A stretch of DNA of 64,000 nt from Rhodosorus marinus CCMP1338 (GCA_029953675.1 JAMWBK010000001.1:2232001-2296000), one strand, 5' to 3'. Positions 20,505-40,459 are shown, numbered from the stretch's first letter. Translations and numbers: made by a program. The notes: generated by a model not told the origin, from the sequence alone.

Positions 20505-20921
20505 TCAGGGCGCCCATTGCTTCGCTTTCTCACCCTCGTAGGCAGCGGCCCCGAGGGCGATGAACGAGATGATCGCACCGGGAGTGATTCTGCCAGCACG
20601 CGCTGCGCGTGGCGCCATCGCAGCAATTAGAACGCACGAACAACCTAAAAGAACAAAAGCAGCTTGAGAAAAAGGGGATCAAAGGTCATTCTTGTGCGCA
20701 GTCGTGGAATCGGATGGCGCAGCTGTAGGCCTACCAAAAGCACCCAAATGTCCCTCGTACTCATGCCCGTTATTAATCGCATAGGCGGATGCCAGAAACC
20801 CTAATCCTATAGGAAGACTACCAGCCAGTGAAGGAATCGATCGTTTCCTGGCGTAGGCAATACAACCACCCAAAATTGTTATCGCTCCCATCGTATTAGC
20901 AATATGGCCCTCCCCTCCCAT
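20505..20921 (-). CDS. TMEM14 / FAX family small membrane protein, 2 exons
   Basis: 'GGCIAYARKRSIPSLAGSL' Tmemb_14 signature. Intron ~20733-20646; exon 2 'GCSCVLIAAMAPRAARAGRITPG...WAP*'. Confidence 0.85.
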
Positions 20922-20999
20922 GGCGTTTATATTGATCAACAACTTCACTACTTCACCAAGCACGCAACGGATCTGTTTTACAGGCTCTTAGCTATGATC

Positions 21000-21964: not shown

Positions 21965-22666
21965 AACATTCGTTGGAACGTTGACACAGTCAACGTAACA
22001 TTCGGCGTAACATTCGCTGTAACATTCGTTGTAACATTGGTTGTAACATTCGCTGTAACATTCGTTGTAACATTCGTTGTAACATTCGTTGTAACATTCG
22101 TTGTATCATTCGTTGGAACATTCGTTGGAACATTCGTTGGAACATTCGTTGGAACATTCGTTGGACAAGTCCCCACCCGCCGTGATCCAGACTTCATCGC
22201 GTTTGCTACTTAGAGAGGGATGGTCAGGGAGCAGCCCGATCTTCGAACAGACGAGTCAGAAAGCTCGTCTGGTCTAAGCGAAGGGTCATGTTGGACTCAC
22301 CCACGAACCCCTCCATCAACGCAACATTCGTTGGAACGTTGACACAGTCAACGTAACATTCGGCGTAACATTCGCTGTAACATTCGTTGTAACATTGGTT
22401 GTAACATTCGCTGTAACATTCGTTGTAACATTCGCTGTAACATTCGTTGTAACATTCGTTGTAACATTCGTTGTAACATTCGTTGTATCATTCGTTGGAA
22501 CATTCGTTGGAACATTCGTTGGAACATTCGTTGGAACATTCGTTGGAACATTCGTTGGAACATTCGTTGGAGCATTCGTTGGAACATTCGTTGGAACATT
22601 CATTAGAACATTCGTTGGGACATTCGTTGGGACATTCATTGGGACATTCGTCGTAACATTCGTCGA
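21805..22666. repeat. 358-bp-offset tandem duplication containing two 12-bp minisatellite arrays (AACATTCGTTG[G/T])
   Basis: 21805-21996 is repeated at 22163-22354. Arrays are 21997-22164 (14 units) and 22355-22666 (26 units). Minus strand reads (T/A/M)NV(P/T). Confidence 0.97.
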
Positions 22667-22735
22667 GCCAGAGCATTGCCGAGCGGGTAGGTAGAAATCC
22701 CAGTTCGACAAAGAAGGTTGAACGCCGTGGTATGC

Positions 22736-23809
22736 TTAGAACCTACCCTCTCGCACTTGCGAAATTCTGAGTATCGGCTTTTCGGGTTCGATCTTTAGGC
22801 TCAACCCTTCGCCATCATACATCAGGTCCTTCGCCAGCAAGTACTCTTTGGTCTTGAGGTCTTCAAGATCGATGAAGACCGCGTCTGGGGGTTTTGCGTA
22901 GGGCTCAAGGATCGCCTGGGTTTTTGAAACACGGGCTGCGGATTTAGTTCGAGGTACAAGCTCAGATTTCGGCAGCTCGCGAGTGGAAGAGAAAAAGCTC
23001 ATACCGGTACAACACGAGTAAGGTGATTGATATAGCCCTTTCTGAGACCAGGGGCTTTGTCAACATTGAGAACAACCACTTGAAGAGCGAACTGACAAGG
23101 CTGAGAAATGGGTCTTCTCACTAGCGTGAACGACTGTGGAGTATCCCGTATAGGATCAAGCCAGAATCTGACAAGCCAGCATCTTTCTTCTTCAACGATT
23201 TTCTCGTTCTCGTAGACTTTGACGTGGTAGAGAGGGCCCCAGTAATGTCTTTGTGCAATTGGTAGTGGGGGCAAGTGGATCATTCCTGGACAAAAACATG
23301 TCCAGTTTTTCCCCGATCAGCGATGCGCCCCACGCACAGAAAGTCTGCGTTTCAGTTTCTGGTGAACTCAGCTTACCTCGTTGAAAATGGTCCTCAAACA
23401 GCGAGATTTCGCCGGTTAGGAAGCGCATCGATTCCCTGTTTTCATCTGGATCGATTAAAGTACCTGGAATACTGTCCAGTATTACAAACATACAGCCGTT
23501 TATTTTCAGTTTCAAACCTCTTGGCCACCCAGTTACCCTGGCAATCGGAAACCAATCCACTTACAATTTTTTCTCCCGCCTTAACTGCTTAAGATGAGCT
23601 ATTTTCATCGTGCGCCGAACCACAGTCGTCATTTCCTGCTGGCAGTACGATCGAAGGTCCCGCTGCGACCTTTCTGCAGCCTCTGAGGCACTCTCCGGGA
23701 CACTCGAAAACCGGCATAACCCGAAGACACCATTTCGATCGACAATCGGTACGCCCTTCAAGCGTCCTGATCTACTGATCAGAGGTCCTAATCCACTCCG
23801 TCCAAGCAT
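22736..23809 (-). CDS. rplY: Organellar (probably mitochondrial) ribosomal protein bL25/TL5 (CTC type), spliced
   Basis: C-domain 'VVVLNVDKAPGLRKGYINHLTRVVPV...PPDAVFIDLEDLK...LLAKDL' fits Ribosomal_TL5_C. N-terminal presequence and 'QLRREKK' start of the L25 domain. Confidence 0.75.
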
Positions 23810-24299
23810 TTTGGAATAAAATCACGGGCCCATTTGCTCATGTTTCTTGTCAACTTGAGCTCCTTTCAATCCCCACTATCATCACCCGTGCGACTCTTAA
23901 ACGGCCTAGCCAGGACAATCACAATCCGTTCAGAGCAAAAGCTCCCGCGACGAATTGATTTAGTAAATTTCACTGATCGTACTAATTGCATTTTCAATGT
24001 TGATGGTATTACTAATATATACGATTTGGTTGGCCGATAAATTTCACGAGTACACTATTGAATAAATGTAATAATTTAGCACATATCTGATTAAAATTCT
24101 TCAAAAACACGAGTCCGATTGGTGATCCGATAAACGTTGGATAACGGTCAGAGAAAAAGTTCGATATTCAATCAATATTGGACTACTAATCAATCATCTC
24201 AGTTCCAGATATTGAATCATGATTACTTCTTGGTGTGACAAGCTGTCACAGTCATGCATTGAACGGGCCTTGGACAGGACGTTCCAGCCTGAAAGCCTA

Positions 24300-24560
24300 G
24301 AAGCTGCTTTCCAGCTTAGAACACAAGTCGCTTACTTTGATGGAGAAGCTGTAGCCGATGCCTCGATGGTTGGAGGTGCATAAACTGCCCCAGACTACTA
24401 GTACGAAGACGCGGATTCGATTCTACACGAATTTTCATTGCGCTGGCGAGTCTGCTCGACCCCGCGCTTCTGCTTCTGTGGGAGGCATGTCGCGTTCCAG
24501 CCTTCCAGCAGTTCGGCCTTTCAGCAATGTCCGGCTAAGCCAAATTAAGCTTGAGCTGTG
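24300..24560 (+). mobile_element. CRE-like relic (zinc-knuckle region)
   Basis: 'ILHEFSLRWRVCSTPRFCFCGRHVAFQPSSSSAFQQCP' resembles EF..A.RLRLG...C.CG...H...C. Upstream 'PRWLEV' resembles the AWL motif. Confidence 0.4.
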
Positions 24561-24590
24561 GCAGAATCTCTGGAGGGGGTGCGGCTACTA

Positions 24591-24748
24591 CTAATTGCCA
24601 CTAAAATTCACCCAAGTCAAGGCCGACGATCGTCGTTCTACATAGTCACAGCTACTTAAGTAACTACAATGTATCCTTAAGCGTGATTCAAATCTAGTAA
24701 CGGCTATTGCTAATGGCCACTAAAATTCACCGTAGTCAAGGCTGACGA
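24591..24748. repeat. 39-bp direct repeat, period 119 bp
   Basis: 24591-24629 vs 24710-24748, 4 mismatches by eye. Confidence 0.85.
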
Positions 24749-24939
24749 CAGACAAATAAACTGACAGTCGATCCGATCCTACCCCTGGCTATCCCAAAGG
24801 TAAGCCTAGGATCCCAACAATGTTCAATACAACTAAGTCTCAAACATGGTAGTTGTAACTATGCTAGAATCGCGCGGAAGATTATGTTAGATGTCTAAAG
24901 GCCGAACTTGGGCAGGTAGAAGAAGAGTAAAGTAACGAA

Positions 24940-25236
24940 TTCTGGCTACACGTGATGTCAGGCTTGATTAGGTTTGTTCAGGGGGTGATCGACTCTCATC
25001 CGCGATTTACTTCAAACTAGCCTGATCATCTATACTTTGTTGTCTTGAACTTTGATAGTCTCGGGTTCAGCAAATCCGCGACGTATTGTATTTGCATCAC
25101 TTTTTCCTACCGACGAGAACGAGAGCGATGGGGTGAATTCACTAAATTTAGAACCTATGTCCCAACCAACGAGCAAGTGGCTGACATAACTACAAATCCG
25201 GTAACGCGAGAACATTTCCACAAGACAACAGCATAG
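24940..25236 (+). mobile_element. Ty1/copia LTR-retrotransposon RNase H C-terminal relic
   Basis: 'YVPTNEQVADITTNPVTREHF' matches the copia terminal motif YV.T..Q.ADI.TK.L....F. The upstream KHID..HF region is degenerate. Confidence 0.75.
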
Positions 25237-25365
25237 AGAGAGAAGAGCAACTACGCTAAGGCATCGAAGATACACTAAGACATCTTTAGATTATGTCGGT
25301 CCAATTTCTCAGAATCGGAGATGGTTCCGACCTGGATCACGCATTGCTGAAGTATTCGATGTGAG

Positions 25366-25720
25366 GTGCAACCCATCTGCGTTGTTGTGCTCGAGCTAAC
25401 AGTCGTTTGTCCGGATCTTCTCGGCTGCAGGATAAAATTGTCGTTGAAGAGCTGTCTCAAACTCGACGAATGTCGTCGGCTTTTTATCAGCTGGCAGCAA
25501 GGAATACCAGTACGAGGCGTCACCCGTAAGGTATCCTTCCGCAAAGAGTATTTTGTAGACGTCGTCGTCTTTGCCAAGTCCCGCCAGTTTGAAGTAATGC
25601 TGTTGAGCCAAGTATTGATAAGGCAGAGAGAGCATCGCGCTTTTACCGTCATGAAAGCCCTGGGTTTCAGCTCGGCTACTCCAAAATTCAAGATCCTAGT
25701 CCTAACAAATCGCCAATTAG
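25366..25720 (-). mobile_element. Ty3/gypsy-type gag (Retrotrans_gag) relic, copy 1
   Basis: 'LKPRAF..DGK' then 'AQQHYFKL...LFAEGYLTGDASYWYSLLPADKKPTTFVEFETALQRQF' matches the gag core. Frameshifted. Confidence 0.7.
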
Positions 25721-26130
25721 GTAATATGTCCCAAATCTAACTTCTCTGTTCTAACTCTGGTTCCCCAACCTTGCCAAAACGTCTTAGTTTCCATCAGTTC
25801 AAAGCTTTCGAAATAAACGCAATTCAATATTTCAACCTGCCTTTTGCGACTGCCACTGGCTGCGAATTTCCACGGATTCTAAGAGGGGGGATATTTGTCC
25901 GCTTCGAAGGATTAAAAAATAAATTTGATACAAGTTAATTAGACCAATTATGGTGCTATTTATTTTGGTCTTAACCAATTAAAATCTATTTATCTTACTA
26001 TTAAAAAATGTTTTGATTGTTTGATTTTTATTTTCTGAAAAAGTAGTTGTAATAATAATAATAAATGAAAAGGAGGAACAGAAATTTTTTTCGAGTGTGG
26101 CTCGGAAAAGGAAAGTTGGGAGATAAGACG

Positions 26131-26197
26131 AGCGCCCAACACTTGGCTGGTTTCAGCGCCCAACACTTGGCTGGTTTCAGCGCCCAACACTTGGCTG
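26131..26197. repeat. 24-bp tandem repeat x2.8 (AGCGCCCAACACTTGGCTGGTTTC) in an AT-rich block
   Basis: Units start at 26131, 26155 and 26179. Confidence 0.92.
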
Positions 26198-26345
26198 ATT
26201 TTACTTATATTTAGAAGGTTACAAAGTACATCTATAATTAAGAATAAAATATTTTCAAATTTGGGCGTCTCAAATGAAAACTGAACTTTATTTCAATATT
26301 AGTACTGGACAAATGTTGTCTTCATATAGTCATAAGTCCATCTGG

Positions 26346-26600
26346 CTAAAGTTGTTCAAACCAGCTATGTCGTTTCCAAAAATAAGATCGATGGCTAGTG
26401 TCCAAGCCCGCTTTAACTAGTTTTTCTAACAACAAAACTGAATTTAAGCTGAGAAACGGCATGGCCGATTCGTGGTCGGCGGGAGCCGCCCAGCAGGCCG
26501 CTCTCTCTTCATGACGCAGCGTACGTAGTGCAATCAAGGAGAAATAGCAAGTGCGTGCAGTTTTAATCGCATCAAACGGCGCTTCCCTCGTCTAGCCAAT
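26346..26600 (-). mobile_element. Possible CRE-like relic (AWL region)
   Basis: 'RAACWAAPADHESAMPFLSLNSVLL' resembles AGAWL.A.P...M....F..A.RL. Confidence 0.3.
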
Positions 26601-26667
26601 TAACATCTAGATGCAGGGAGAATTTGAAAACAACGCATGGAAAACTCCGGTATCACTGACCACCTAT

Positions 26668-26970
26668 TCACCAGTACGCGGCGTCACCCGCAAGGTCTCC
26701 TTCCGCAAAGAGCATTTTGTCGACGTCGTCGTCTTCGCCAAGTCCCGCCAGTTTGAAGTAATGTTGTTGAGCCAAGTGTTGATAAGGTAGAGAGAGCATC
26801 GCGCTTTCCGTCATGAGGCCCTTTGGTCTAAAAACCTTGAAAGCCGAGTGACTGAGAGGCAAAGCGCAGACCAATGCACGCAGGTGGTTGAAGAGAACAC
26901 TTTCAGAGAATGAAACAGGTTTAAAAACCAGTTCTACCGAATGCGAGTTGTTCTTTTTCCCACGCAAAGG
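26668..26970 (-). mobile_element. Ty3/gypsy-type gag relic, copy 2
   Basis: ~26672-26822 is highly similar at DNA level to ~25506-25660. 'DGKRDAL...AQQHYFKLAGLGEDDDVDKMLFAEGDLAGDAAYW'. Confidence 0.7.
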
Positions 26971-27089
26971 CGCGGCTCGACGAAGAATCTTTAGTATGTT
27001 GGGGGTCCTGCAAAGTCGGAAGCTACATTAACTTGCTTCCGACTAGTTGATCTACAGAGATAATATGCTCTGATTTAGAGCGAAATAGG

Positions 27090-28023
27090 CTACGTCACGT
27101 AGCTAGATACGAAAGCAACAGTGTTGTAAGCGCAGCTGAGAATGGATGCGATCACGATCCCCCCTACAGGGTAGAAGGTCATAAGCCTCAATGCCTTCGG
27201 TCCCATGCGTCTCACAACGGCGAATGCGATTGTGGTGCACAGGGCGTGCCCTACTCTCGGTGCTTTACCGGACCGTATGAGCCAGGATGAGACAATCATC
27301 AACGTGCCAATGACCATTCCGCTGCTTAACGCTGCTTGGGACCCTTGCCTTATATATCCAGCAATCCCGAGGGTAGCAAACCCTACTCCTACTAAAGCAG
27401 AGAAGAGGGATCCTGCCCTCCATCCGGGGTCAATCGCAGCAGACCATGTCTCGAATTCCTCCTCATCACCTAGAAGCACCCTTGAATCATACACACATCA
27501 GAAGAACTCCTCTAAGACAGTGATAAAAGCGACGAGTTTCCCGGGCAAGTCTATCTTACGTTAGAACCTTCAGGTTTCCGGGATCCCGTACAATTTCCAG
27601 TACTGTTGCTGGTTCAAATTCTCTTCCCGTAATTGTACTTCTCGAAACTCTCCTTACTTCATCCGCATCCTTGATGACATCCTGAAGGTTGTCCAGAAGG
27701 TGGTTATCCTTCTCATTGGAGACCTACAAGTACCAGAGCAAATAAAACAAAACCGAGGACGTCACGTTTTCAGAACCACGCAAGAAGAGAAAAAAGGGGG
27801 AAGGTCTGCTCAACCATCACCTTCAGAACCACAGTCACCCACGGAGACACCTCAAAATCCCTCCTCGACATTCTTCTAGAGCCAGCAGTCGCGAAGAGAG
27901 ACCAAACCACACCCACCTCTTCAAGACATCAGCCTCAATATGAAACGCTTTCCCCACACCTCCCTTCCTCTCCTCGTCGAACATGCCTGTACTTATGTCC
28001 GCATCGAACAAAGAGCGTCCCAT
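27090..28023 (-). CDS. TMEM14/FAX (fatty acid export)-family protein with an N-terminal soluble extension, spliced
   Basis: Last exon has the Tmemb_14 pattern 'GFATLGIAGYIRQGSQAALSSG...FYPVG'. Upstream exons join (AC|GTAAGA...TCAAG|G) through 'DNHLLDNLQDVIKDADEV'. Confidence 0.75.
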
Positions 28024-28169
28024 TAATTTTTTCTCCAAGCCCTTTTCAAGTGACTACAAACTTCCCAATAAATCTCAAAAATACGATTCAGCCGCCGATC
28101 TAACGTCACTGCTGCAAAGCTAAACTACTGTACAGAATGTGGAGAACATCAATTTTCTAGCAGTTCTGG

Positions 28170-28460
28170 GGTATACAAAGCCGAGAGGTTTAAAGAGTCC
28201 AAATGCCGAGATGCGATCGGAGCTCGCTATGACAACACTTTCATCCTACCAAACGCCTCCACGCAGAAGGAGGCGTTTGGTAGGATGGGTAGGCAAGCTG
28301 ATGAATTCTTGAAAGAGGTGACTGTGCACTTGCAGAACGCATCGACATAAGTCAGCGAAGCACGGGCGACACTCAACCGGTCCTTAGGGTAAGGGAATGC
28401 ACTACTGATCACGAGGCGCGCCGAATTGACGAAGGGAACTATGAGATCATCCTTGTAGTA
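28170..28460 (+). mobile_element. RLE C-terminal relic of a CRE-like element, carrying a perfect hairpin
   Basis: 'AERFKESKC...FIL...EAFGRMGRQADEFLKEV...LNRSLG*GNALLI' matches AE..K..KY / E.FG..G..A..FL..L / QRGNA. Confidence 0.6.
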
Positions 28461-28575
28461 GAACGTAGCCACACAACCCGTTAGGCGGTTTTTAACGCAT
28501 AGACAGACTCCTTATCCTACTGCCCGCTCCAATAGGGAGTCCTTTAGTCAAGCGTTCACGGTTACGCACGGTACG

Positions 28576-29900
28576 GATTACTTCTGAACTCGACAGGTGT
28601 CATGAGCAAGCAAAATCCACCTTTTGTGATCCCACCGAAAAAGGTAACGATTATTGATTCCTCGGCGTCAATACATTGATGAATGAAACCGCTGCCGCGT
28701 AAAACTTTACTGGGTCACTGCCCAGTAAAGTTTACTGGTACGTTAGTCTGGGGTTACGTAAGTTCAATGCCCGAACGCTTAAAAGCTCATCAAAAATAAT
28801 TTATTCTCTTTTCCAATTGTTTTTGGTTGGGGGGTTTGTAGTCACTTAGAATTTTGTCATAGTTTATTGCGTTGCGATGGGCCGTCCGAAGTTTTTCGAA
28901 GTGATAGACTATTGAAAATCAGTATAAAATTACTAGGTGTCAGTTGCAATTCTTGCACCAAACAGGTCCGATTGCCGGGTCCGGTGGACGGGTCGGTATT
29001 TAACCACCCAATATTCGATCATCTCCAGTCCAGGCATTGAACCATGATTACTTCTTGGTATGAAGCATATCATGAATCATGATTACTTCTGAACTCGACA
29101 GGCTGCCATAGCATTGGTTGAGCAAGCAAAATCCACCTTTTGCAATCCCACCGATCAAAGGTAATGGTTCCACGGCGTATTGATGAAAATGAAACCCTTG
29201 TCGCGTCGGCAAACACGACCATGCACCTAAAAAGATGAAAAATCATTGCAAACATATCTAGTAAAGTCAAGTCAAGATATCGGACCCATCGATTTTTTTG
29301 TACCGGACCGAGATGACACGCCTAGTATATCACCGTAAAAGCCAGTATATCACCGTTGGTTCTCGTTGGAAGTGTTCCGCGAAACGCCCTGACCCGTCTG
29401 TCGTCGTCGTTTTAGTTTCTTGCCGTGGCGTATGAACGCTGCTTTGATGTTGGAGTCGCGGCGATCTTCGCCGCGTTAAGTCTTCACTTTTTTCCTCTGA
29501 GGGGTTTTTCTCCAGTCTCCGATTAAACAAAATTCGTTCAGTAAAAATCAAAAAGGTTTGCATTAGGGGGCGGACCCTTATGATATACGGTAATTTATTA
29601 TTTTTATAATATAATCTTGTCCCGGTGGATCTTGTTTTGTTTTATTTTATGACACCTACGGCGGGTTCACCAAAAACACTTCGAAGGGGGGTCGGATCGA
29701 CTTTAGATCAAATGAGAGCTAAATGATTAGTAGTATGTAATTTGCTAGAATTTTGTTTTTTGCAACAATGTCCAACCCCCTAAAATCTCCCCATCAACAA
29801 AATCCCCGCACAAAATCCCCACCTTTTGTGATTATCCCACCTAAAAAGGTAATCATTCCTGGGCGTGTTGATGAAAATGAAACCCTTGTCGCGCCGGCAA
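28576..29900 (+). repeat. Three diverged copies of a ~90-130-bp non-coding repeat
   Basis: Copies at ~28576-28699, ~29081-29212 and ~29811-29900 share CAAAATCC(CC)ACCTTTTG...AAAGGTAA...TTGATGAA(AA)TGAAACC. A related flank occurs at 24194-24234 and 29018-29059. Confidence 0.85.
29353..29540 (+). repeat. ~190-bp dispersed non-coding element, copy A
   Basis: Aligns with the reverse complement of 54435-54632, including the shared exact core AGTTTCTTGCCGTGGCGTATGAACGCTGCTTTGATGTTGGAG. Confidence 0.9.
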
Positions 29901-30621
29901 GATCAAAGAACTAGACATACATAATTTATTTTCGTTTCAGATTTTTGTTGCCCCAATGTCCTGTTTAGGACAGGTTATGTTTATCTTGAGGATCATAGAA
30001 GCCTAGATTAAGACTTGGGAGATAATTTTGTTGTTGTTGTAGATTACTCCCAAAAAAGTCGAAGCTCTTTCTTGCAAGAATTACGTTCTATGACTGTGTG
30101 GGTAATTTGGTTAGGACTTATAATAATTTATTGTTTTTATAAGATACTCTACCCCTCCAACACGAGTCTTGTTTTGTTTTATTTTATGCACGGTAAATCC
30201 GATTTTGGCAAAAAAAACGCACGCCGCGTTCGCGAGTCTCTTGTTCATTGCCTAGAAGGGTCGACTACTGCAGGGTAGGGTCCGCGGTTGAGTTCGGGGT
30301 GGTAGGCTCTTTGTTTTACCAGAAAACAAACAGTCGGGGGGTGGGTATCCGACAAGTGGTGGTTGGGGAAGAGAGTCACAGGCGTATGACTACTGCTTGG
30401 CCTGTTGAGTGACTCGTGTCGTCGCGATGAGGCTTGGCGTTTTTCCTCGTTTCGCGCGGTATAGAAGGTATTTTTGTTTTCGTGGCCCGTTCCCTCAGGG
30501 TTCCGCCCAGGTGGTTTCTCCTCTCAGGGTCGGGGGTGTGTCTGGATAAGCGATTGGATCATACTTGTTTAAGGGATTTTGGGAATGCGGAGAAGAGTGG
30601 GCGGACTTTGGTGCGGCCTCC

Positions 30622-31420
30622 GCAAATTGGAGAACCATCTTTCGACTCTGAGGAGACGGGGGAACACTATTCTATGTGGCCCCTGGGCTAAAAATGTGGC
30701 TCCAAGATCCTTGGGGGTTGCCGAAACAAGTCGCAACGGGCTGACCGCGTCCACAATTGAGCCACAGTAGGAGTGTAGTAGAATTAAAGGCATTTTTGGG
30801 TTTCGGGAGGGACTAATCGGGAACCGGCAAATTGGAGAACGATTCTTGCCGTTCTGTAGAAATCAGGGAACCACAGCTCAGGCTAGCTCCTGGGCAAAAA
30901 ATGCGGCACCAAGATTTGGCGGCACCAAATTTTCGGGGTGTGCAAAGCAAGTCGCAGACGGCGACCATGTCAGGAAAGGAGCCACAGCAGTGCTGTAGTA
31001 GAATCATAGGCATTTTTGTTGCGCGCCCACTATTTCCACTCCGAAATTTTGTCCAGTTCTACTTCGAACTACCCCAAACAGCCAAGCCTGCTAGGGAGGG
31101 TTTGATAGGGTGTAACAAGTACTTGCGGACGCATACTCAAGAGGTAATAATGTGGGAAATACAACTAGTTATCACTACTTTCGATCCTTTCTTGACGTGC
31201 TCAGCTCTTCAAAGCTCTTTTCTCAGCTTGGTCGATCGTTCACGACCTCATTCTGCCCACCAGAGGCTGCTGCGCCATATTTCTGGCCGGGGAGCCCTCC
31301 TGAGATCTGCTCCCTGCTTTCCTTCAAGTGGGAAGATGACACTCTCCAGTTTGCTGGTTCGCAACGCATTCTGGGGTTTGGGAGGGCCTTGCTGCGACCG
31401 GCAAATTGGAAAATGATCTT
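30622..31420 (+). repeat. Diverged ~205-bp tandem repeat (2 copies plus a partial third)
   Basis: GCAAATTGGAGAAC at 30622 and 30827, GCAAATTGGAAAAT at 31401. Shared internal blocks CCTGGGC.AAAAATG.GGC.CCAAGAT, CAAGTCGCA, GAGCCACAG and TGTAGTAGAAT...GGCATTTTT. Confidence 0.85.
31152..31370 (+). mobile_element. Possible decayed tyrosine recombinase C-terminus (DIRS/Ngaro/Crypton-like)
   Basis: 'SYHYFRSFL...FTTSFCPPEAAA...GSPPEICSLLSFKWEDDTLQF' parallels 'Y..F...L...FT.HSFRRGAA...G.P.E.I..LG.W.S....Y' with catalytic residues lost. Confidence 0.35.
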
Positions 31421-31649
31421 CCCACTCTCAAGAAACCACAGAACAACATTTAGAGTAACCCCTCGGCTAAAACGCTCTGGCTCCGAGGCCCTATGGGGAC
31501 CAACAGAAAGAGACCAAGGTGAACAAAAGGCCTTGAACGGCTGACCAAGTTAAGAAAGGAGCAAGGGTAGCGCTGACCAGTCGCATTTTCCGCGTATTGA
31601 CCTCTTGTTTGTGTTTCCATAGCTGTTGGCAAATGGGACGTGTATGATC

Positions 31650-32000
31650 CTGCATAGCAGGCTCGCCTGTTTTGGGGTAGTTCGAAGCAGGGTAAGGGCC
31701 GAATTTCCGCGTGGAAAAGTCAAGGCACAGCAGAAAACGGATTTGTTCACGTTTGCTAAAGCTTTCTCCGGGGTGACCCGCTTAGGAGGAAGGGAGGTGG
31801 GTATGGGACATCGGTATGTTACAAAGAAAATTGATATGGGGGTCTTTCTGGAGGTTCTGAGGGGGGTGTCGCCCGGACGTTGAGAGAACTGTATGGAGCG
31901 TCCCATGACTCTTCTAGCGACATGCAACGTGTGCAGGCCGGAAGTGAGAGGATGTCTAGGATGCAGGTGGAGTCTCATTCGGATGCCGGGGATGGGCATG
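31650..32000 (-). mobile_element. Possible CRE-like relic (knuckle to RLE)
   Basis: 'GLHTLHVARRVMGR...RPGD...PISIFFVTYRCP' follows the expected order G.H...C / RPGD / A.DVT...P. Confidence 0.35.
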
Positions 32001-33182
32001 TTAGGCCCGTATCCCAAGTGTTACGCAAGGAATGGCTGGGACGCAATTAGGGGCTCAGTCGGACCCCGAATGGAAGGTGATCCCATAATATACTCCATCG
32101 TTTAGACCATTCTCCCTGAAATGCTCTAGATCTCATCATATCCTTTCAAGTCCAGGATGATTATCATCTTGAGGACGCTAATTTACACCCATCCGCCTCT
32201 TCCGTTGCTAAGAACCTGCGCGAAGAGGTTTCAGAAACGTATGTCTAGCAAAGTGTTTTTAGGGATTACAAGCTCGTACCATATATGAGTGCGCCTGACC
32301 CTGTGCACGGTGCCTTCATCTGGAACTCAACACCCCCAAATCTCGCCAATATCTACCATTACACAGGGCCTATACAGCTCCCATGCAAAGAAGCCCCACG
32401 ACATATGAGAATATCGTATTGCCTACCCTCCCGTCAAGTTCAGCATTCTGTCCAAACTGTCCCAAACTGTCCCACAAAAGTATTAAAATGACTAACTCAG
32501 TCGTTTTATTTCCTAATAACTTCTGTCCCAGTCGAAGTGTATAGCTGCCACCTTTCTCTACCCCTTTCTGCAAAAACTACTCCATCTACAGTCATCAAAA
32601 TTTCTTCCAATACTGAAAAATCTTTTTCTTCGGCAAATGTCCACAGGGGGCTGGCGGCCGGCAGGGTGCGAACGTCCAATAATAGCAAATCGCGATCCCA
32701 ATCTGTGCTTTATCTAGACATTTCTAAGACTCCAACCTATCCTAGAGCCTCAAATTATAACCCAGCAAACATTTCGAATTTTATCGTATTAAAGAAAACA
32801 TCGCCCAAATCTCTTCCAGGTCCAAAATTTTAGAATATCTCCATTTCGGCGGATTTTATGTATCTTTGTTTTCAAAACATTTGATAAACAACGGACTGTC
32901 CTAATCAGGAGTTTAGTAGACCCCATGGCTCCCCCTAAAATTCTCTAAATATGGAAACTCTGGGGGATTCTATACCTTTTTGGGGGAGGGAGGGAGGAGG
33001 GGAAGTTGGTGTCTTGGGTGGTGGTACCTTTTTGTCAGTTCAAGATGAGTCTGGCGAGGGTGGGCAGGGTTTTGTATGGATTGATGAGCTGGCCTGGGAT
33101 AGTGGCGTAGGTGAGTGATGGGAGGCAATGCGTGTGTGTGTATGTATGTGTCTATGTATAGAGATATATAGACTTTTGGAAT

Positions 33183-34110
33183 ATGGATGTGGTTGATTAT
33201 GTAGGAGTGGTTGCGTTTTTCTATTGGATAGCAGGGTTGATTTTGGTGGGATGCAGCTTGGTATTGGGTAAGGTCAGGGCGATTGTATCGTACGGGAAAC
33301 ATGCGAGAGGATGGGTGGCATCGAAGCAGCCTCCTGCGATCGTACACTCGTTGTTGATCAGAGGCACAGTCCCGAATAAGGTGGCCTGGACCAGCTTTTA
33401 TGCGATTGGGCTCGTGATCAATTCCGTTCTGATCAGGGAGTATTTCTACTTGAAGGACATGAACCTGAGGAGCCTGTCAACTTCTATCATGTTCGAAATT
33501 CATGTGGCGAGGAGATTGATAGAATGTATCTATGTTCATGTGTTCACCCCACGATATTTGCCGCTGTTTCATTACGCCGCAGCAGTTTCTTTTTATTTCT
33601 TCGCCCCGTTGACCCCGTTCCTAGATGCGCTTCTATACCCGGCTGTTCCTTCACCATCCCAAGTGGCTGCAGCTGCGATACTCTTCTCGGCAGCCTCGCT
33701 GATGCAGTGCTTCGTTCACATCCGCCTCGCCGAGTCAAGAGCACTCGGTGGTTCCAAATACGGCGTACCTCGGGGAGGCCTATTCGAACTTGTCGCCTCA
33801 CCTCACTATACCGCCGAGATCGTTATGTACACTGCATTTGTAAGCCACTCCTTCCAAAAAACGATTGCTAAACCCGTCCTCCACTACATCTTTTTTTGTA
33901 AGCTAACATACTCTCTGAACGGTTCATACTTCAATCCAACGCCAGCTGATTGCTTCAAACGGATTAGGTTTCTTCGCGTTTCTCAACTGGCTCTGGGTGT
34001 TCGGAAATCTCGCCCAGTCCGCTCTTGAAACCAACGCTTGGTACAAGCGTACGTTTGTAAAGTCCATGCTCCCGCCGAGAAGAAAGGCACTCATACCTCA
34101 CATTTTGTAA
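33183..34110 (+). CDS. Polyprenol reductase (SRD5A3/DFG10; steroid 5-alpha-reductase family), 2 exons
   Basis: 'YGK', 'VPNKVAWTSFY', 'EIHVARRLIECIY', 'KYGVPRGGLFELVASPHYTAEIVMY'. Last exon 'NLAQSALETNAWY...RRKALIPHIL*'. Confidence 0.9.
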
Positions 34111-34299
34111 ATAAATTAATTCGGAGAGTCCTTCCAATGGAGCATAGCATCACCGAGCAGCAACGATCCAGCGGGGAAGAGAACCCCTCCGGTAGGGCCT
34201 TAGCACTCGTATTGAACGCGAAAGGGGAGGGGGTTCGTAGTTCATTGTTCGATAGGAGCGACAAGGCAGGTGATCTCCAAGGGTCCAAGGGTCATCCAG

Positions 34300-34600
34300 A
34301 AGCTACGAGAGACGCTCAGAATCGCTCCGGGCGCAGGAAAAGCCTCCTGCCCGCTAGGGATGAAAACTGGATCGCTTGTGAGCAGTGCTCGCTGGAGAGT
34401 TTTCGGGAGGGAACGTTTGTAAGAGCATTCGCTGGAACATTCGAAGGAGTCTCGCTTGAGAACTGATTCATGTCGAGTGACAGCTTCGCAGTGAGCAACC
34501 TTCCGTGACAAGCTGCTAAGCGCTCTTCGGCAACAGCGACAGCCTCCCTCTCCTCCAGTGCAGAGCTCAACAGGTTCGATTAGGGCTCCGGGTTTGACTT
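34300..34600 (-). mobile_element. CRE-like zinc-knuckle relic followed by three degenerate NVP 12-mers
   Basis: 'CRCCRRALSSLSRKVAHCEAVTRHESV' resembles C..C....D..G.H...C....RH..V. ~34405-34447 reads PSNVPANALTNVPS in another frame. Confidence 0.4.
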
Positions 34601-34610
34601 GGAAACGACA

Positions 34611-35195
34611 TTAGCTGTGTGTGGTGCCTCGACGACTCTCGACTTCATCATTTGGGTCTTCCCGTGCCAAGCTGACGTCGTCTCTCAAGTGGTCGCATAC
34701 CCTCAGTTTCGCCTGGCACTCGAGGACAGCAGCTTTCCGGTGGATTCTGACGGTATCAGATTCGGCAGGAATGGAGTCGAGCGACTCCAGGCACTGGCGC
34801 AGTCCCTCTTCACAAGATTTTAGCTTCTTCTCGAGAGTATCAAGGACGTCTGCGGTTTCCTCTTTGTCCAAGAATCCTCGCGAGATCTCGTGAAGTGTAG
34901 CGGATAGCTCCTCACGAGTTACGTCCAGCTCCCCCACTCGCTTCTCAACCTTTCGAATCTTAGCCATGGCGTCAGTCTCCTTGCGGCTCTCAGCGGTAGA
35001 TCCCAGCAGCATCACCTTGGAACCTAATTTGACTACAATCTCGTCGTCCGTCAAACTTTTCCCCCTCATTATCAGCTTCTGCGCAGCCGCAGGAACTCCC
35101 GTCCGATCCTCAAGTTGCTTCCGCAGCTCAGCAACGCTGAGCTCATCACTGAACGCGAGCCTGTTCGCTCCGTGAACTACAACGATTTCACCCAT
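34611..35195 (-). CDS. BAG-family co-chaperone (ubiquitin-like domain plus BAG domain; BAG1-like)
   Basis: UBL 'LSVAELRKQLEDRTGVPAAAQKLIMRGKSL...GSKVMLLG'. BAG helices 'EEGLRQCLESLDSI...RIHRKAAVLECQAKL'. Confidence 0.88.
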   Translation of the reverse strand: MGEIVVVHGANRLAFSDELSVAELRKQLEDRTGVPAAAQKLIMRGKSLTDDEIVVKLGSKVMLLGSTAESRKETDAMAKIRKVEKRVGELDVTREELSATLHEISRGFLDKEETADVLDTLEKKLKSCEEGLRQCLESLDSIPAESDTVRIHRKAAVLECQAKLRVCDHLRDDVSLAREDPNDEVESRRGTTHS

Positions 35196-35493
35196 TAATT
35201 AACAGCTCATGAAAGAATGTCCTACAAAACAATAAGAAAAAGAAAGAAAGACACCACACCAAACCCTAGAAACTCCCAATCCTCCCCTCCCACTCTGCGC
35301 GCCCCAACACCCCGAACCCTTCTAACAACCCCTGGCGAGGGGAAGGAATACCTACCAGTGGACCTGACTCATACAAGGGTCCCATTTTGCGTCTCAGTAT
35401 CTGTCTGCAGCTTCACTCTGTCTGGAGTGGTGCTTGCAAAGATACGATGCGTAGGCATAAGGAATCAGTGTATACGGAGGCTCTAACCAACGC

Positions 35494-36600
35494 TTAGGCT
35501 TTTGCAATCTGCCCCTTGCTCACCAGGCTTGTCCCAGCCGTTATGGGACATCTCTTCGGATTCCGATACTGGGGGTGTTTTTCGTTTGCTTGAGCGTTAC
35601 AGTGACCGCCCTGATGCTCTTTCTGAAGCGTATGCTTCCTTTTGAGAGTGAATCTCTGGGGCTGTAACGCTGCCTTAGTTTTGGAGGCGCCCTTCCTAGC
35701 TTGCCACAGTGGGGACCTTGGCCTGCGCATAAAACCGATCTGTCTGTCGACCGCCCAGGATGTGGTATAGGATCAGGCTTAGCAGATAGCACGCCAATGA
35801 TGAGGGGAAAGAGTTGTACAAACAGGCAGCGGTAGTTAGAATCAATCAGATCGACAAGCAGTATGACCGGTTGGCGGTCGTGAGGACTGTAGAATGAAGT
35901 CCAGCGTGTAAGCTCTGCACATGCGATGCTGGGTTTCGCGGATCGAGGAATAGTTGATGCGGAAGTCAAGTTACATAACCGCGAGATTGTCACTTGGGAG
36001 TTAAAAAGCCATATACAAGTTTCCAGATAACCTTCTTGCGGCCTGCGTCGTCAGGTTTTCCCGCAACGTTTCAAACATTGTCGGTCGCACGATCAAGCTG
36101 TGCCATAATCCTCACGATGCTCTGAGAATGTATTCACTGAGTACAGGCGGGCGCCTATAGCACACTTGCGGAAACACCCTCAGTGTGTAGACAGCGCACG
36201 GAGCGTTCACATCGCTTCTCCTTGGACAAGACTCGGAGTAGCACCAGGATATCGTATTAGACGTTATCAACTATGGAGACTGTATTTGTCTGAAGAACCC
36301 TCGGATTGGCTCCACTTGCCAAATGAACCTGCGTGGACGCAGTGAGCTGATTTTCCGGTGCAGACATTCCACAGGAGGGCTCTGGGGGATGGACTAAGTG
36401 ACTGGCTAGTCCGATTGCGAGTGGGCTGGTTGTCGCTGACTGCCGTTCTGTTTGAACGTTGTCGGGCACGCGTTCGTGCTGCACAACAAGTTCTGCTTGA
36501 CAAGATCTGTCCGAGATCGAGTGGGTTGATCTTGTGGTTCCTGAAGGTGGACAAGCTGATGTTCGGATGTTTCATCTTCATGAGGTTGGCTAGATATTAT
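35494..36600 (-). mobile_element. Decayed CRE-like relic (post-RT to RLE)
   Basis: Weak ordered motifs 'YDILVLLR', 'VQSLHAGL' and 'EKHPQY' across several broken frames. Confidence 0.3.
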
Positions 36601-36683
36601 CAGAGATCCAGTTCTTTTCCGATGAAGAGAAGCGAATTCTCTCCGCTGAAGTCGTCTTCGTCGAGGATGGTCGCGGGCGCCTT

Positions 36684-37348
36684 TTAAGCGACGTTCACGA
36701 AGATGGAACCGTCCTCAACCTTCGTTGGATAGACTTTCAGGGGGTTCTCTTCCTTCATCTTGCCAACGAATGGGAGCTTCGGCATGCCAGGGCACCATTC
36801 GCCAACGACATCGCCGGTCTTCATGTTGAAGGCCTAATGAACAGAATTAGGATATCGGGCTTTGAGCTTTCGAAACGGTGCAGGTGAAAATGAAACGCGC
36901 TCATAGTCTAAGGTGTTCGCTTACCGTCTTGTGAGCGCTACAGACGATCGATCCTGTGCTTGTATAGTCTGCTTTCAGGATTTTTCCCTAAATGGGTTTT
37001 GCACAAAAAAAGAACAGGAACAGGGGGAACAAAACAAGAAGGCGATACATGATTAGTCGTCCCGCACAATCATTGCTACAGTTCTTGTGTAATTTCCAGC
37101 ACCTCCAGGGGCAAATTCAGATGTGGACAGCTGTTAGACATTGCGAAGACATCCCCTGCGAACTCCTTAATGAGAACCTTTCCAGAATCGATCTTGACCA
37201 CCTTCTTCCCTCCTTCTGCGTTGAGCTCCTCCACAGTCCCAACAGGAGTCCACTCCTCAGCCATGGCTCGTACAGCCGATCGACCGCACACCGCCCGATC
37301 CACACCACGAACCTTCCCATACATAAACCCGCCGCTCACGAAACCCAT
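36684..37348 (-). CDS. Plastid-targeted Rieske [2Fe-2S] ferredoxin, 3 exons (37348-37103, 36987-36925, 36833-36684), 152 aa
   Basis: Ligand boxes 'SCPHL' and 'CSAHK..F...TG'. MGFV-type transit peptide. Exons join in frame at GT-AG sites. Confidence 0.92.
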
Positions 37349-38579
37349 TTTCAGCAAGAGGATTTAAAAAAAACACACACGCACACGCACTCTCTCTATC
37401 TATCTAAAAACTCTTCTAACGTTCTTCCAATAACCCTCAAAACAAACAAAAGCAAATCCAAACATTCCCCCCCCCCCCCTTCCGCCTGCCACCCGCTCCC
37501 ACCACACCCACCCAAAAGGGCTCATTTGGATCCCTTTCACCCTTCTCAATCCCCAAAATCATATTGTATGTACTCAAAATCTCAGCATTTCCCCACACCA
37601 GCTAAAAAAAAATCCACATCTAGAAAACATCCCAAAAAACCAAGTTCTCAATATCTCAATTAAAAACAATCTAAATATCAGTCAATATGGAAGATTTATT
37701 AATGAAATTCTTTCTGAGTATGCTTTATATTGATTGAAATGTGATTGGAGGTTACGTTAGTCTGGGGTTAACAGGAGGGAGGAAGAAGATGTTGTGGACG
37801 GGGGGCAATGCGGATTGATCCTGGGTTCATGTTATGCAGAAGTAGATGGCTTTCACGTTTGATCCGCGCTTTTATGTATTTGGAAGATCTGATCTGGGCG
37901 GTGAAGGGTTTTTTTGTTTGTTGTTTTTGCCAGTGGGGGAGGGATGGAGAGAAATCGTATGGATTTTTTTTGGTTTGGTCCTGGATAGGCGCTTGTCCTT
38001 GTTCAGCGCGAGTAAAGGAACGGTATTTCGTTGGCGGGGTGTTCAGTACAACTGTGGTAGCGATGAAACGGAAAGCGAATGTCGTACACGTGGAGTGGAA
38101 ATCAGTGTCTTGGAAGAATTTGATAGGTGGGTAGCACCAACCGTAGAGGGTGATCGGCATGACCCGCTTAATTCATAGCGCAGCTTCCCAAAGGAAACAA
38201 CTTAGTTGTGGTAGGATTTTCGATTTCTCTCAACGTGCGAAGTAGAACACTGGCCGTCCTACTAAAGCGAAGACCAACCGCTGCGGTGTTCGACATGTAC
38301 CCTGGAGAAGTGGGCTCCTGTCCGCGCAATTTCGTTGTATTATTGAAAATGTTAGTCGGATTTTTTACTTTTCTGATGAGGATTGGATTGTGATGATTAT
38401 GAAATGGTTTTATTTATTAATAATCTTGATAAACGGGAGGTCTTAATTGGTATGAATTTTATAAACGTATTCTTGATTGGATACTAGTATTTTGTTTCCA
38501 AATTATTTTTGGATGATACTTTTGTTTTCCTGAGTATTTTATTTAGTTTTTCAGGAGGCGAGCCGTATGTTTGTGCTTT

Positions 38580-38900
38580 GTTGTTTAGCCGACGCGATGG
38601 GGGCCGGGGCTTGTGAGGTTGGATTTGGACTTGCTTTGGTTCGATACTCGGGATAAAAACGCCTCCGAATTCGACAGAACCTTTGGTAAAATGCCAAACA
38701 GCTTCTCGGTCAGAACCGTACATGGCATGTTGGCCTCCCAGTCAGTTCTTTTGAGACGGCGGTTGTCCTAATGATGTCTCCGTTTTTGCAAGAGTCGTGA
38801 CCTGCACAGAAAGAGCCTTAGCGAGTCAACCGAAAACTGTGGTTCTGGATTTTGCTTTGGGTAATTTATAGAGCGTAGACGCAAGCATCCCTTTCCGCTG
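38580..38900 (+). mobile_element. CRE-like RT N-terminal relic
   Basis: One frame reads 'PSQFF*DGGCPNDVSVFARV...KTVVLDFALGNL*SVD', matching Q.GVG..GG.E...HA.R and LD..NAFNS.. . Upstream 'RRDGG' resembles KKDGG. Confidence 0.5.
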
Positions 38901-39004
38901 AGGTTAAGTACAAACGCCTCCGGGGCCGGCGGATGGAGACGAAACCGTGACAGTACGATTCAATTACATCTGGATGGTAAAAGTTTGAAGACGCAAAGCG
39001 TAGG

Positions 39005-39896
39005 ATGAAGTTTGGTGTGCTCTCTACGCCTCCAAGTCTCGGGGAGCTTCGACGATTCCTCGGTCTTCAGAGTGTTGATTTGCCACTTCAACGGCCGTAC
39101 GTTTGGACGACGTCGGTCACCTCCATCGACGGGCGGACGAGCACACAAGAACCTGACGCTGAGGGTGGACATGCAATTGCCACTGCGGGCGGGAAGTATA
39201 ATGGCCTCGTGGACAGAAAGATCCTTGAGCATGGATGGAAAACCGCGGATGCGATCCTCACGACCGGAGAAATTCTGAGATCTGAACCCACGGTTACGTA
39301 TCGACCATCCGGAGCGCGCCGAAAACCGCTCTGCATTATCCTTACGGCATCTGGAATGATCGACCTGGATCATCCAGTGTTTCGTAGGAATCGGACGCTC
39401 ACTGTAACAACGAAGGAGGGACTTCGCCGCCTCAAAGGCTTTCGGAAGTCTGCCGGCCGGGATATGATTGTTTCGGACTCCAACGAGTCTAAAATTAGCC
39501 TCACGTGGCTCCTCAGCTACCTTCGCAAAGAGAAAAACGTTCTGTTTCTTGACGTCAACGCTGGTGGAAGGACGATATCAGATTTCCTAAGTCATGGGCT
39601 TGTGGATGAGATGAGGATAAGCTTGGTGGGAACGGTGCGCCCTGATCTTTCCGTTGACTCCATTTTCATTAGCTTTTTACAAAGAGACTTATTTACAAAG
39701 CAGCGAATCCACGGCTTCCTGAACCCAGATCCTAGGCAGATGGAGTTCTCAAGGCCAGGAGAGGTCGTGCCTCATTGACAACCCTACTGAGACTTGCTAC
39801 GACCTCCGCAATCTACCACTACTATCTTTCAACGAGATTAGAACGACGACCGATGCAAGTCACGTCTTCCTACGACTCAGAACTTCCGGATCATGA
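39005..39896 (+). CDS. Stand-alone RibD C-terminal-domain reductase (pyrimidine reductase/DHFR fold), 2 exons
   Basis: 'RPYVWTTSVTSIDGR', 'ADAILTTGEILRSEP', 'KPLCIILTASG' and 'VNAGGRTISDFLSHGLVDEMRI'. Exon 2 from ~39730 ends 'SHVFLRLRTSGS*'. Confidence 0.85.
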
Positions 39897-40076
39897 ACTT
39901 GTTGCGGCGGGTCAGGTGAGCAGCATTGGACCAGGGTCTGTCAAACAGAATCGCTTCAGAATGTTCTCGGAGGATTATATTGATCCACATCCTCTCTTCC
40001 AATCATTGCACTTATTTTCGTGCCCATGCTTCATATGCAGCTTCCTTCCTTGAAAGCTCGCTTCACCATGACCAGT

Positions 40077-40424
40077 ACATTGACCGGAACATTGGCATGG
40101 GATTGGCCACAACCTTTGCCGGAGCATTGACCGGAACATTGGCATGGGCATTGGCCAGAATATTTGCCGGAGCATTGACCGGAACATTAGCATGGGCATT
40201 TGCCTGAACATTGGCCGGAACATTGGCCGGAACATTGGCCGGAACATTGGCTGGAACATTGGCCGGAACATTGGCTGGAACATTGGCCGGAACATTGGCC
40301 GGAACATTGGCCGGAACATTGGCCGGAACATTGGCCGGAACATTGGCCGGAACATTGGCCGGAACATTGGCAGGAAAATTGGCAAGGAAAATTGGCTGGA
40401 AGATTCGCTGGGACATTGGCCGGA
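40077..40424. repeat. 12-bp minisatellite AACATTGGCCGG (14 near-pure units at 40207-40374) with a 48-bp higher-order block on the left and degenerate units on the right
   Basis: Directly visible. Minus strand reads ANVP repeats and (ANAH ANVP VNAP ANIL)-type tetramers. Confidence 0.97.
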
Positions 40425-40459
40425 GCAAGTGGTCATACATTTTTCGCAGACGTAACGAG

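Follow-up and report, generated by a model that had tools for sequence, protein, structure and literature searches.

Three 12-bp minisatellite arrays, probably related, in spacers downstream of genes in the red alga Rhodosorus marinus

Known tandem-repeat systems and the Rhodosorus arrays

The closest described counterparts of the repeats reported here are the intergenic and 3'-UTR minisatellites (VNTR) of eukaryotes, in which head-to-tail units are present in tens of copies at non-coding locations, variant units are grouped in blocks, a homogeneous core is bordered by degenerate edges, and higher-order periods occur. Short tandem repeats also form the 3' tails of some stringent-type LINEs, which terminate in a stem-loop that is followed by the repeats; the eel element UnaL2, for example, has a stem-loop and then a short repeat tail. 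LINEs of the CRE/SLACS clade encode a restriction-like endonuclease and insert site-specifically into repeated sequences such as spliced-leader genes and telomeric repeats. Finally, satellite families that spread by reinsertion, as described by the extrachromosomal circular DNA model, form related but separate arrays that have unrelated flanks and lack transposon hallmarks.

The arrays described here lie in a 64-kb window of the nuclear contig JAMWBK010000001.1 of Rhodosorus marinus CCMP1338 (bases 2,232,001-2,296,000; GCA_029953675.1), and all coordinates refer to this window. They share with eukaryotic minisatellites each of the features listed above, including a head-to-tail unit, here of 12 bp, but differ from them in that three loci with one core and one orientation occur within 18 kb. 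This arrangement points to a small dispersed family and not to unrelated arrays, where the word 'family' denotes three loci in one 64-kb window and thus rests on small numbers. We consider it probable that the three loci are non-coding minisatellites that derive from one ancestral 12-bp unit and sit in short intergenic stretches just past gene ends, in a compact nuclear genome. As it stands, a small related minisatellite family in a red-algal genome matters little.

Architecture and relatedness of the three arrays

At period 12, Tandem Repeats Finder (TRF) delineates 21995-22163 (14.1 copies, 93% matches), 22355-22663 (25.8 copies, 91% matches) and 40077-40424 (29 copies, 80% matches), and therefore the many head-to-tail copies of a 10-100-bp unit that characterize a minisatellite are present (Table 1). 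The first-pass annotation had described three loci with a 12-bp period and an AACATT core, and this holds: the pattern AACATT-N6, repeated three times, matches the window 46 times as compared to 0.00 expected. Array A1 is divided by a tandem duplication at 21805-22523 (TRF period 358, 2.0 copies, 98%), whose copies are 98.6% identical over 361 bp when the window is aligned to itself with blastn. Identity at lag 12 reaches 0.92-0.96 in the array cores (96% in the core of A2), whereas in the left part of A2 it is higher at lag 48 (0.73) than at lag 12 (0.61). Units of the GT and GG subtypes are grouped in blocks, and the array edges are degenerate. These features are signs of replication slippage and unequal exchange, by which the arrays would expand, contract and homogenize locally; the two processes would account for the subtype blocks, for the homogeneous cores with degenerate edges, for the 48-bp period of A2, and for the 358-bp duplication in A1, a recent event that took unique flanking sequence along.

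Table 1. Repeat arrays, their subdivisions and neighboring genes in the 64-kb window
Feature	Position	Strand	Description
A1	21997-22666	+	14 + 26 units of AACATTCGTTG[G/T]; array split by 358-bp duplication
U1	21805-21996	+	192-bp non-repetitive segment; first half of 358-bp higher-order unit
A1a	21997-22164	+	14 12-bp units; AACATTCGTTGT-type at left, AACATTCGTTGG-type at right
U2	22163-22354	+	second copy of 192-bp segment, from 358-bp tandem duplication
A1b	22355-22666	+	26 units; first 14 repeat A1a, then GG-type, then degenerate GGGACATTC at right edge
A3	34412-34459	+	degenerate remnant of 3-4 units: AACGTTTGTAAG AGCATTCGCTGG AACATTCGAAGG
A2	40077-40424	+	29 units of AACATTGGCCGG
A2, left part	40077-40206	+	old diverged units in 48-bp (4-unit) higher-order repeat
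A2, core and right edge	40207-40424	+	~15 near-identical AACATTGGCCGG units, then degenerate units including AAGATTCGCTGG at 40400
Probable TL5/bL25-like ribosomal protein gene	22736-23283	-	stop 70 bp from A1; ~65-bp intron
Steroid_dh, steroid 5-alpha-reductase-like gene	33183-34110	+	convergent with BAG gene; end ~300 bp before A3
BAG / ubiquitin-like gene	34611-35195	-	stop ~152-164 bp from A3
RibD_C gene	39005-39896	+	convergent with Atx10; end 180 bp before A2
125-aa PANV-repeat ORF	40063-40440	-	gene in deposited BRAKER annotation; no Pfam match
Ataxin-10-homology (Atx10) gene, 380 aa	40460-41602	-	PF09759; exact gene product on record; stop 36 bp from A2

The remnant A3 was recovered with a degenerate three-unit pattern that matches at 34412-34441 and nowhere else outside the arrays (expected 0.02), and in a position-weight scan it scores 31 bits as compared to a null maximum of 16. 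A profile scan of the 64 kb detects three loci only, all of which read AACATT on the + strand, with the signal reaching 22678 in A1b and 40435 in A2. The loci have the same period, and their units resemble each other more than chance would predict: the unit consensuses are identical at 9 of 12 bases (P = 0.011 for a random 12-mer of the window in any rotation and on either strand), which makes common descent likely. Variants that carry the CG of A1-type units bridge the loci, as AAGATTCGCTGG is found at the edge of A2 and AGCATTCGCTGG in A3 (34424). Judged from these comparisons, A1, A2 and A3 likely constitute a related, same-strand 12-bp repeat family of common descent, in keeping with the earlier proposal. 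It is quite improbable that the arrays arose separately and are alike by chance or mutational bias; AACATT....GG repeats of 12 bp with all kinds of middle sequence occur in >120 unrelated metagenome contigs, which makes the motif on its own non-diagnostic, and the flanks of the arrays have nothing in common, but an independent origin is at odds with the consensus identity, the low expectation for a third locus, the shared strand and period, and the bridging variants. A separate consideration is that the hexamer AACATT (AATGTT on the minus strand) is invariant in both large arrays while the other six bases drift, and this conservation might stem from a sequence-dependent role, for instance in the binding of a factor, instead of shared ancestry and homogenization.

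If the arrays descend from one unit, it would have closely resembled AACATTCGCTGG (+ strand; minus strand, CCAGCGAATGTT). Its spread over distances of 6-12 kb may have involved DNA-level reinsertion of a piece of the repeat, either in gap repair or from a circle of repeat sequence, or a former carrier that can no longer be recognized, and we think that either route is more likely than retrotransposition to have dispersed the copies. Separate but related arrays whose flanks are unrelated and that bear no hallmark of a transposon are also what the extrachromosomal circular DNA model describes, although its application to R. marinus is something that we purely infer.

Reading frames across the arrays

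Translation of the minus strand yields PTNV/TTNV in A1, PANV in A2 and SNVP-ANAL-TNVP in A3, which agrees with the xNVP readings noted previously. In this frame A1 can be read through for 131 aa and A2 for 125 aa; the latter ORF has an ATG and was called as a gene by BRAKER, an annotation under which the arrays would be exonic or relic parts of a gene whose protein has (P/T)(T/A)NV repeats. In addition, the A1 ORF exceeds the threshold of the Pfam 'PT repeat' family (PF04886, 30.2 bits). We find a coding origin scarcely plausible, and a relic coding (T/A)NVP repeat is not supported because there is no excess of synonymous changes, the hexamer is fixed, several frames are open and homologous proteins are lacking. 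Stop-free 12-mer repeats are open in several frames, and the FRPM frame of A2 is in fact longer (162 aa) than the xNVP frame, whereas the A1 ORF has no ATG. The synonymous N and P codon differences between loci, which the first-pass annotation had read as conservation of N-V-P, amount to two of only three consensus differences, and there is no third-position excess within the arrays: variation at codon positions 1, 2 and 3 of A1 is 8/5/7, synonymous and non-synonymous codon changes number 4 and 13 in A1 and 6 and 30 in A2, and the codons AAT and GTT never vary, even at their third positions.

Protein comparisons lead to the same result. A profile of both array translations matched only unrelated low-complexity proteins, and the A1 ORF belongs to no protein family beyond the low-complexity 'PT repeat', a compositional family whose match to this one-frame translation is likewise compositional. 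The 125-aa ORF is absent from a collection of 15 billion proteins and no homologues of it were found. Moreover, its ATG lies 20 bp past the Atx10 stop, leaving no space for a promoter. The ORF is therefore most likely a spurious gene call on top of a minisatellite, and a probable error in the deposited annotation is thereby flagged.

Flanking sequence, transposon signatures and neighboring genes

CRE-like relics had been reported at two of the arrays in the first-pass annotation, and none could be confirmed. Pfam searches gave no match to RT, zinc knuckle or RLE in the six frames of 20.4-22.0, 33.0-34.6 and 39.8-40.1 kb (the A2 flank), nor in the ORFs of 24.3-32.5 and 35.2-39.0 kb. For RT or RLE matches beside the arrays, a search of the PDB, which includes R2 structures, was empty, and HMMER found none among 1.84 billion proteins; F/YADD-type motifs are also missing near the arrays. 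The sole CCHC/RLE candidate, an 'RRDPDF' ORF at 21712-21852, has three matches among the 1.84 billion proteins, all of them tandem-repeat artefacts, and it was discarded as an RLE relic since no RLE or RT relatives were among them. The sequences upstream of and flanking the three arrays are unrelated (Smith-Waterman z < 3 for all flank pairs; no blastn match), the flanks carry no terminal repeats, and the search for target-site duplications returned just chance-level matches of 8-9 bp, with a single 9-mer located inside two coding regions.

These results bear on the possibility that the arrays are sites at which CRE-like non-LTR elements preferentially insert, or 3' tails that these elements produce by template slippage, such that the 192-bp segment U and the repeat that follows it represent a 5'-truncated element end. 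A1 resembles the tails of stringent-type elements and their SINE partners in that a stem-loop segment precedes a tandem repeat on the + strand: U1 contains a hairpin with an 8-bp stem (CAGACGAG-N8-CTCGTCTG, within 15-nt arms at 21883-21897 and 21906-21920) ~75 nt ahead of the array, and another small palindrome, ACGTTGAC-ACA-GTCAACGT, is positioned at the junction to the array. The preference of the CRE clade for repeated targets and the stem-loop and tandem-repeat ends of some LINEs are compatible with this reading, which is nevertheless improbable. The R. marinus arrays differ from such tails in having no RT body, no common 3' region and no target-site duplication, and with a 12-bp unit and lengths of 350-670 bp they are much longer than is typical; U occurs in the window solely as two tandem copies. 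Were the arrays tied genome-wide to abundant, recently active CRE-like LINEs, they would be of greater importance because, to our knowledge, little has been learned about the targets that this clade chooses in hosts other than trypanosomatids and fungi. According to the tables of the paper describing the R. marinus genome, CRE/SLACS LINEs, the dominant transposons of the host, make up 9.04% of it in 4036 copies, with families at ~1% divergence. However, no CRE coding relic is located at or near the arrays and no array is broken by an insertion. Non-coding CRE fragments could lie in the flanks, and a link between the arrays and CRE-like LINEs has a low probability. It is very improbable that the AACATT-core arrays are landing pads or slippage-made 3' tails of these LINEs that persist as empty or decayed sites; were this the case, red algae would harbor a site-specific retrotransposon clade whose target or tail specificity is new.

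The distances from stop codon to array given in the first-pass annotation are correct (70 bp from 22736, 36 bp from 40460 and ~164 bp from 34611), whereas its generalization that the repeats lie 3' of minus-strand genes stands only as coordinates: A2 and A3 each occupy a spacer of ~500 bp that is flanked by convergent genes, RibD_C(+)/Atx10(-) for A2 and Steroid_dh(+)/BAG(-) for A3, and are thus 3' of genes on both strands, so that position and strand carry no statistical weight at n=3. The neighbor of A1, named bL25 previously, is identified solely by a sub-threshold Pfam match to Ribosomal_TL5_C (E = 0.018), with its splice sites taken from the sequence and no homologue found by word-indexed search. 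The protein clusters of the array-neighboring genes have one member each. Transcript contigs for Atx10, BAG or the 125-aa ORF were absent from the collections searched; RNA-seq data are included in the genome paper.

An arrangement of this type raises the question of whether the arrays have a cis-acting role in the termination or 3'-UTR zone, at either the DNA or the RNA level. They might serve as a pause or insulator where convergent genes meet, or offer multivalent binding to a factor that recognizes AACATT/AAUGUU. Each of the three loci shares its spacer with a gene 3' end, and for two of them the flanking genes converge; the hexamer is fixed while the remaining six bases drift, and A2, which starts 36 bp past the Atx10 stop, would almost certainly be transcribed. 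Yet in a compact genome some three quarters of all spacers would contain a 3' end, making three of three unremarkable, and the repeat is absent from the other annotated gene ends of the window (globin, Rit1_C, Rieske and others). Solitary units are not enriched at these ends, and their number in the window is that expected by chance (four on the + strand and one on the - strand, as compared to ~2.9 expected per strand). A3 has decayed to three units and hence was not maintained, and neither Rfam families nor tRNAs were matched at the arrays. We regard a functional 3'-end element as improbable; the arrays would gain importance if they affected how the 3' ends of convergent genes are formed in a compact genome. 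In the common-descent reading, the arrays are probably transcribed passively, within the 3' UTR or termination zone of their neighbors.

A nuclear copy of the tandem repeats in mitochondrial minicircle constant regions is a very improbable source of the arrays. The genome paper reports tandem repeats in nearly all of these constant regions and an unusual abundance of nuclear mitochondrial DNA in R. marinus, but nothing else mitochondrial is visible beside the arrays, whose flanks are ordinary nuclear genes. Simple repeats are frequent in R. marinus according to the same paper, which tabulates 3167 loci with a mean length of ~41 bp, a length that A1 and A2 (350-670 bp) far exceed.

A probable small family of 12-bp repeats

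The 12-bp tandem repeat with an AACATT core is real and is present at three loci, the arrays A1 and A2 and the short remnant A3 (Table). Tandem Repeats Finder (TRF) returned period-12 arrays in both A1 and A2, and three consecutive units of the pattern AACATT-N6 match the window 46 times as compared to 0.00 expected; a degenerate three-unit pattern adds one site (34412-34441; 0.02 expected). Across the 64 kb, a position-weight profile derived from both arrays picks out three loci and no others, each of them on the plus strand. Read on the minus strand, A1 gives PTNV/TTNV, A3 gives SNVP-ANAL-TNVP and A2 gives PANV, and the first-pass annotation's description of the three loci and of these readings agrees with TRF, the sequence itself, and the pattern and profile scans. 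A small non-coding minisatellite family would account for the arrays most economically.

A1 is not a single array. It comprises two copies of a 358-bp unit that are 98.6% identical, each consisting of a 192-bp unique segment (U) and 14 repeat units, and the second copy extends by 12 further units. Its unit subtypes are arranged in blocks, passing from AACATTCGTTGT to AACATTCGTTGG and then to degenerate GGGACATTC units. The left third of A2 is old, with its units grouped by four into a higher-order repeat of 48 bp (identity is 0.73 at lag 48 and 0.61 at lag 12), its core contains ~15 near-identical units (identity 0.96), and its right edge is degenerate. The anatomy of A1 and A2 is the usual picture for arrays evolving by slippage and unequal exchange, and the arrays would evolve by these two processes. 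A3 is decayed.

Features of the repeat loci, their surroundings and the rest of the window (coordinates count from base 2,232,001 of contig JAMWBK010000001.1, strand identical)
Feature	Coordinates	Strand	Description
A1	21985-22678	+	Position-weight profile
A3	34412-34459	+	Position-weight profile; 31 bits versus null maximum of 16
A2	40064-40435	+	Position-weight profile
Period-12 arrays	21995-22163; 22355-22663; 40077-40424		TRF; 14, 26 and 29 copies
A1 duplication	21805-22523		Two copies of 358-bp unit
U hairpin	21883-21920; 22241-22278		Perfect 8-bp stem CAGACGAG / CTCGTCTG, 8-nt loop
U palindrome	21978-21996		ACGTTGAC-ACA-GTCAACGT, at repeat junction
A1 surroundings			Tmemb_14 gene (-, ORF 20679-20963) / minus-strand gene (stop 22736); gene calls, Pfam
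A3 spacer (500 bp)			Convergent Steroid_dh (+, ends 34110) / BAG/ubiquitin-like (-, stop 34611); gene calls, Pfam
A2 spacer (564 bp)			Convergent RibD_C (+, ends 39896) / Atx10-homology (-, stop 40460); gene calls, Pfam
PANV ORF, 125 aa	40063-40440	-	Nearly all PANV repeats over A2; starts 20 bp past Atx10 stop
Inverted repeat, 13 nt	22680-22692 / 22741-22753		92% complementary; 48 nt between arms
Tandem duplication	17273-17485		109-bp unit, perfect (100%); spacer of zf-AN1 and ERG4/ERG24 genes
Tmemb_14 (TMEM14-family) paralogues	20679-20963; 27093-27497	-	6 kb apart
Gag-like ORF fragments	25399-25695; 26671-27027	-	~92% DNA identity across 156 bp (25506-25661 / 26670-26822)
Tandem repeat	26131-26201		24 bp x 3, 97%
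Inverted dispersed repeat	29368-29540 / 54435-54610		~180 bp, 83% identity
Tandem repeat	48625-48745		60 bp x 2, 96%
GC skew	62001-64000		Strongly negative (-0.26)

Compared in one register and on one strand, the consensus units agree at 9 of 12 positions, and a random 12-mer from the window matches the A1 consensus at 9 or more of 12 positions (any rotation, either strand) with P = 0.011. Bridging variants are present at the edge of A2 (AAGATTCGCTGG, position 40400) and in A3 (AGCATTCGCTGG, position 34424); both contain the CG of A1-type units, pointing jointly to an ancestral unit close to AACATTCGCTGG. The motif alone is not diagnostic of kinship, as three copies of AACATT-N4-GG match more than 120 unrelated metagenome contigs, whose middle sequences and 12-bp repeats are of all sorts. 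This metagenome scan, useful only as a control, revealed no flanks common to the window and the contigs, the similarity being confined to the repeats themselves. The three loci, which the first-pass annotation had treated as one family, are thus probably related: common descent is likely, not proven, given that period, core, strand and bridging variants coincide locally. Separately, AACATTGGTGGG forms long arrays on many metagenome contigs (WNFY.../WNGH... and others; loci L009, L011, L040, L043, L085, L100, L110, L121 and L122), a single contig frequently having them on both strands; this abundant 12-bp satellite of another organism shows no relation to the window beyond the repeat itself.

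Coding potential and CRE-like LINEs

The first-pass annotation had also proposed a coding relic in which N-V-P was retained through synonymous divergence. Since a 12-mer repeat without stops leaves several frames open, open frames are expected here; the PANV frame of A2 (125 aa) is exceeded in length by the FRPM frame of the same array (162 aa), and the ORF of A1 has no ATG. Among the distinct units of A1, variation over codon positions 1, 2 and 3 is 8, 5 and 7, respectively, giving no third-position excess, and codon changes are mostly non-synonymous (synonymous versus non-synonymous, 4/13 in A1 and 6/30 in A2). The AAT and GTT codons are invariant, third positions included, so it is a DNA hexamer that is kept and not an amino-acid pattern. 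Moreover, because the A1 and A2 consensuses differ at only three bases, the 'two synonymous differences' between them are without statistical force. A profile of both xNVP translations (the minus-strand readings) retrieved unrelated low-complexity proteins only, no homologous protein, and also missed the window's own ORF, as compositional correction renders protein searches useless for detecting more arrays. Protein coding is therefore not supported. The 125-aa BRAKER model on A2 is most likely a false gene call.

A link of the arrays to the dominant CRE-like LINEs, relics of which were said to adjoin or contain two of the loci, is the one reading that would make the finding interesting, if true. 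Rhodosorus marinus CCMP1338 is a unicellular red alga whose nuclear genome (assembly GCA_029953675.1) spans 31.2 Mb, with 8392 gene models from BRAKER and a total of 24,821 introns (PMC10250338). The supplementary RepeatMasker tables list 4036 copies of CRE/SLACS LINEs, 9.04% of the genome, including two families that are only ~1% diverged and therefore recently active, and report no SINEs, L1 or RTE elements (PMC10250338). This abundance and low divergence make the prior for CRE-like relics near the arrays high. Six-frame Pfam searches of both strands at 20.4-22.0 kb and 33.0-34.6 kb returned no match. The A2 left flank and all ORFs of at least 55-60 aa from 24.3-32.5 kb and 35.2-39.0 kb yielded no Pfam match to reverse transcriptase, zinc-knuckle or endonuclease domains, the sole returns being a weak LTR-type gag relic and the second Tmemb_14 gene. 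Sequence searching of the PDB gave no match, and motif searches detected no F/YADD box near the arrays. The sole RLE-like string near them, RRDPDFIAF in U, lies inside a 47-aa ORF, for which a search of 1.84 billion proteins gave three tandem-repeat proteins, all unrelated, and not one retroelement. The three loci share no flanks by blastn or Smith-Waterman, and neither target-site duplications nor terminal inverted repeats were found at the arrays. Non-coding CRE fragments may be present nearby; a link of the arrays to CRE relics is not supported.

Gene context and 3' ends

The arrays had been placed 3' of minus-strand genes, and the distances of 70, 36 and ~165 bp for A1, A2 and A3, respectively, are correct, but A2 and A3 each lie downstream of a plus-strand as well as a minus-strand gene. 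As the genome is compact and most spacers contain a gene end, we infer that with three loci neither position nor shared strand (chance 0.25) carries weight. For a putative role of the arrays at gene 3' ends the one test was negative: solitary units are as frequent in the window as expected by chance, and its other annotated gene ends have none. The idea of a seed motif common to 3' ends was discarded here. Rfam and tRNA scans returned no family or tRNA. Part of A2 is almost certainly transcribed, as the array starts 36 bp past a stop codon, which is passive evidence. A resemblance of the units to the CCAAT box and Myb core was judged by eye and dropped as coincidence.

The 'bL25' identity of the minus-strand gene with its stop at 22736, next to A1, corresponds to a sub-threshold Pfam match only (Ribosomal_TL5_C, E = 0.018). 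Word-indexed searches gave no match for its last exon, nor for a five-protein chimeric neighbour query aimed at orthologues or transcripts of other Rhodosorus strains. Look-ups of Atx10, BAG and the 125-aa ORF for transcript or other-strain contigs gave the NCBI genome contig alone; the 90% protein clusters of Atx10, BAG and globin have one member each, and the 125-aa ORF is absent from that collection. The two arms of the 13-nt inverted repeat flank the stop of the TL5/bL25-like gene, and on the mRNA they would form a predicted hairpin enclosing it.

Other features of the window

The 24-30 kb interval is gene-poor and repeat-rich, with several short dispersed repeats, and holds both gag-like ORF fragments, which carry a weak LTR-retrotransposon signature (Retrotrans_gag, E = 0.012). 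The inverted dispersed repeat is probably an unclassified interspersed element, and the 24-bp and 60-bp tandem repeats have no relation to the AACATT family. The region of negative GC skew contains C-rich and pyrimidine-rich low-complexity runs close to the window's right end.
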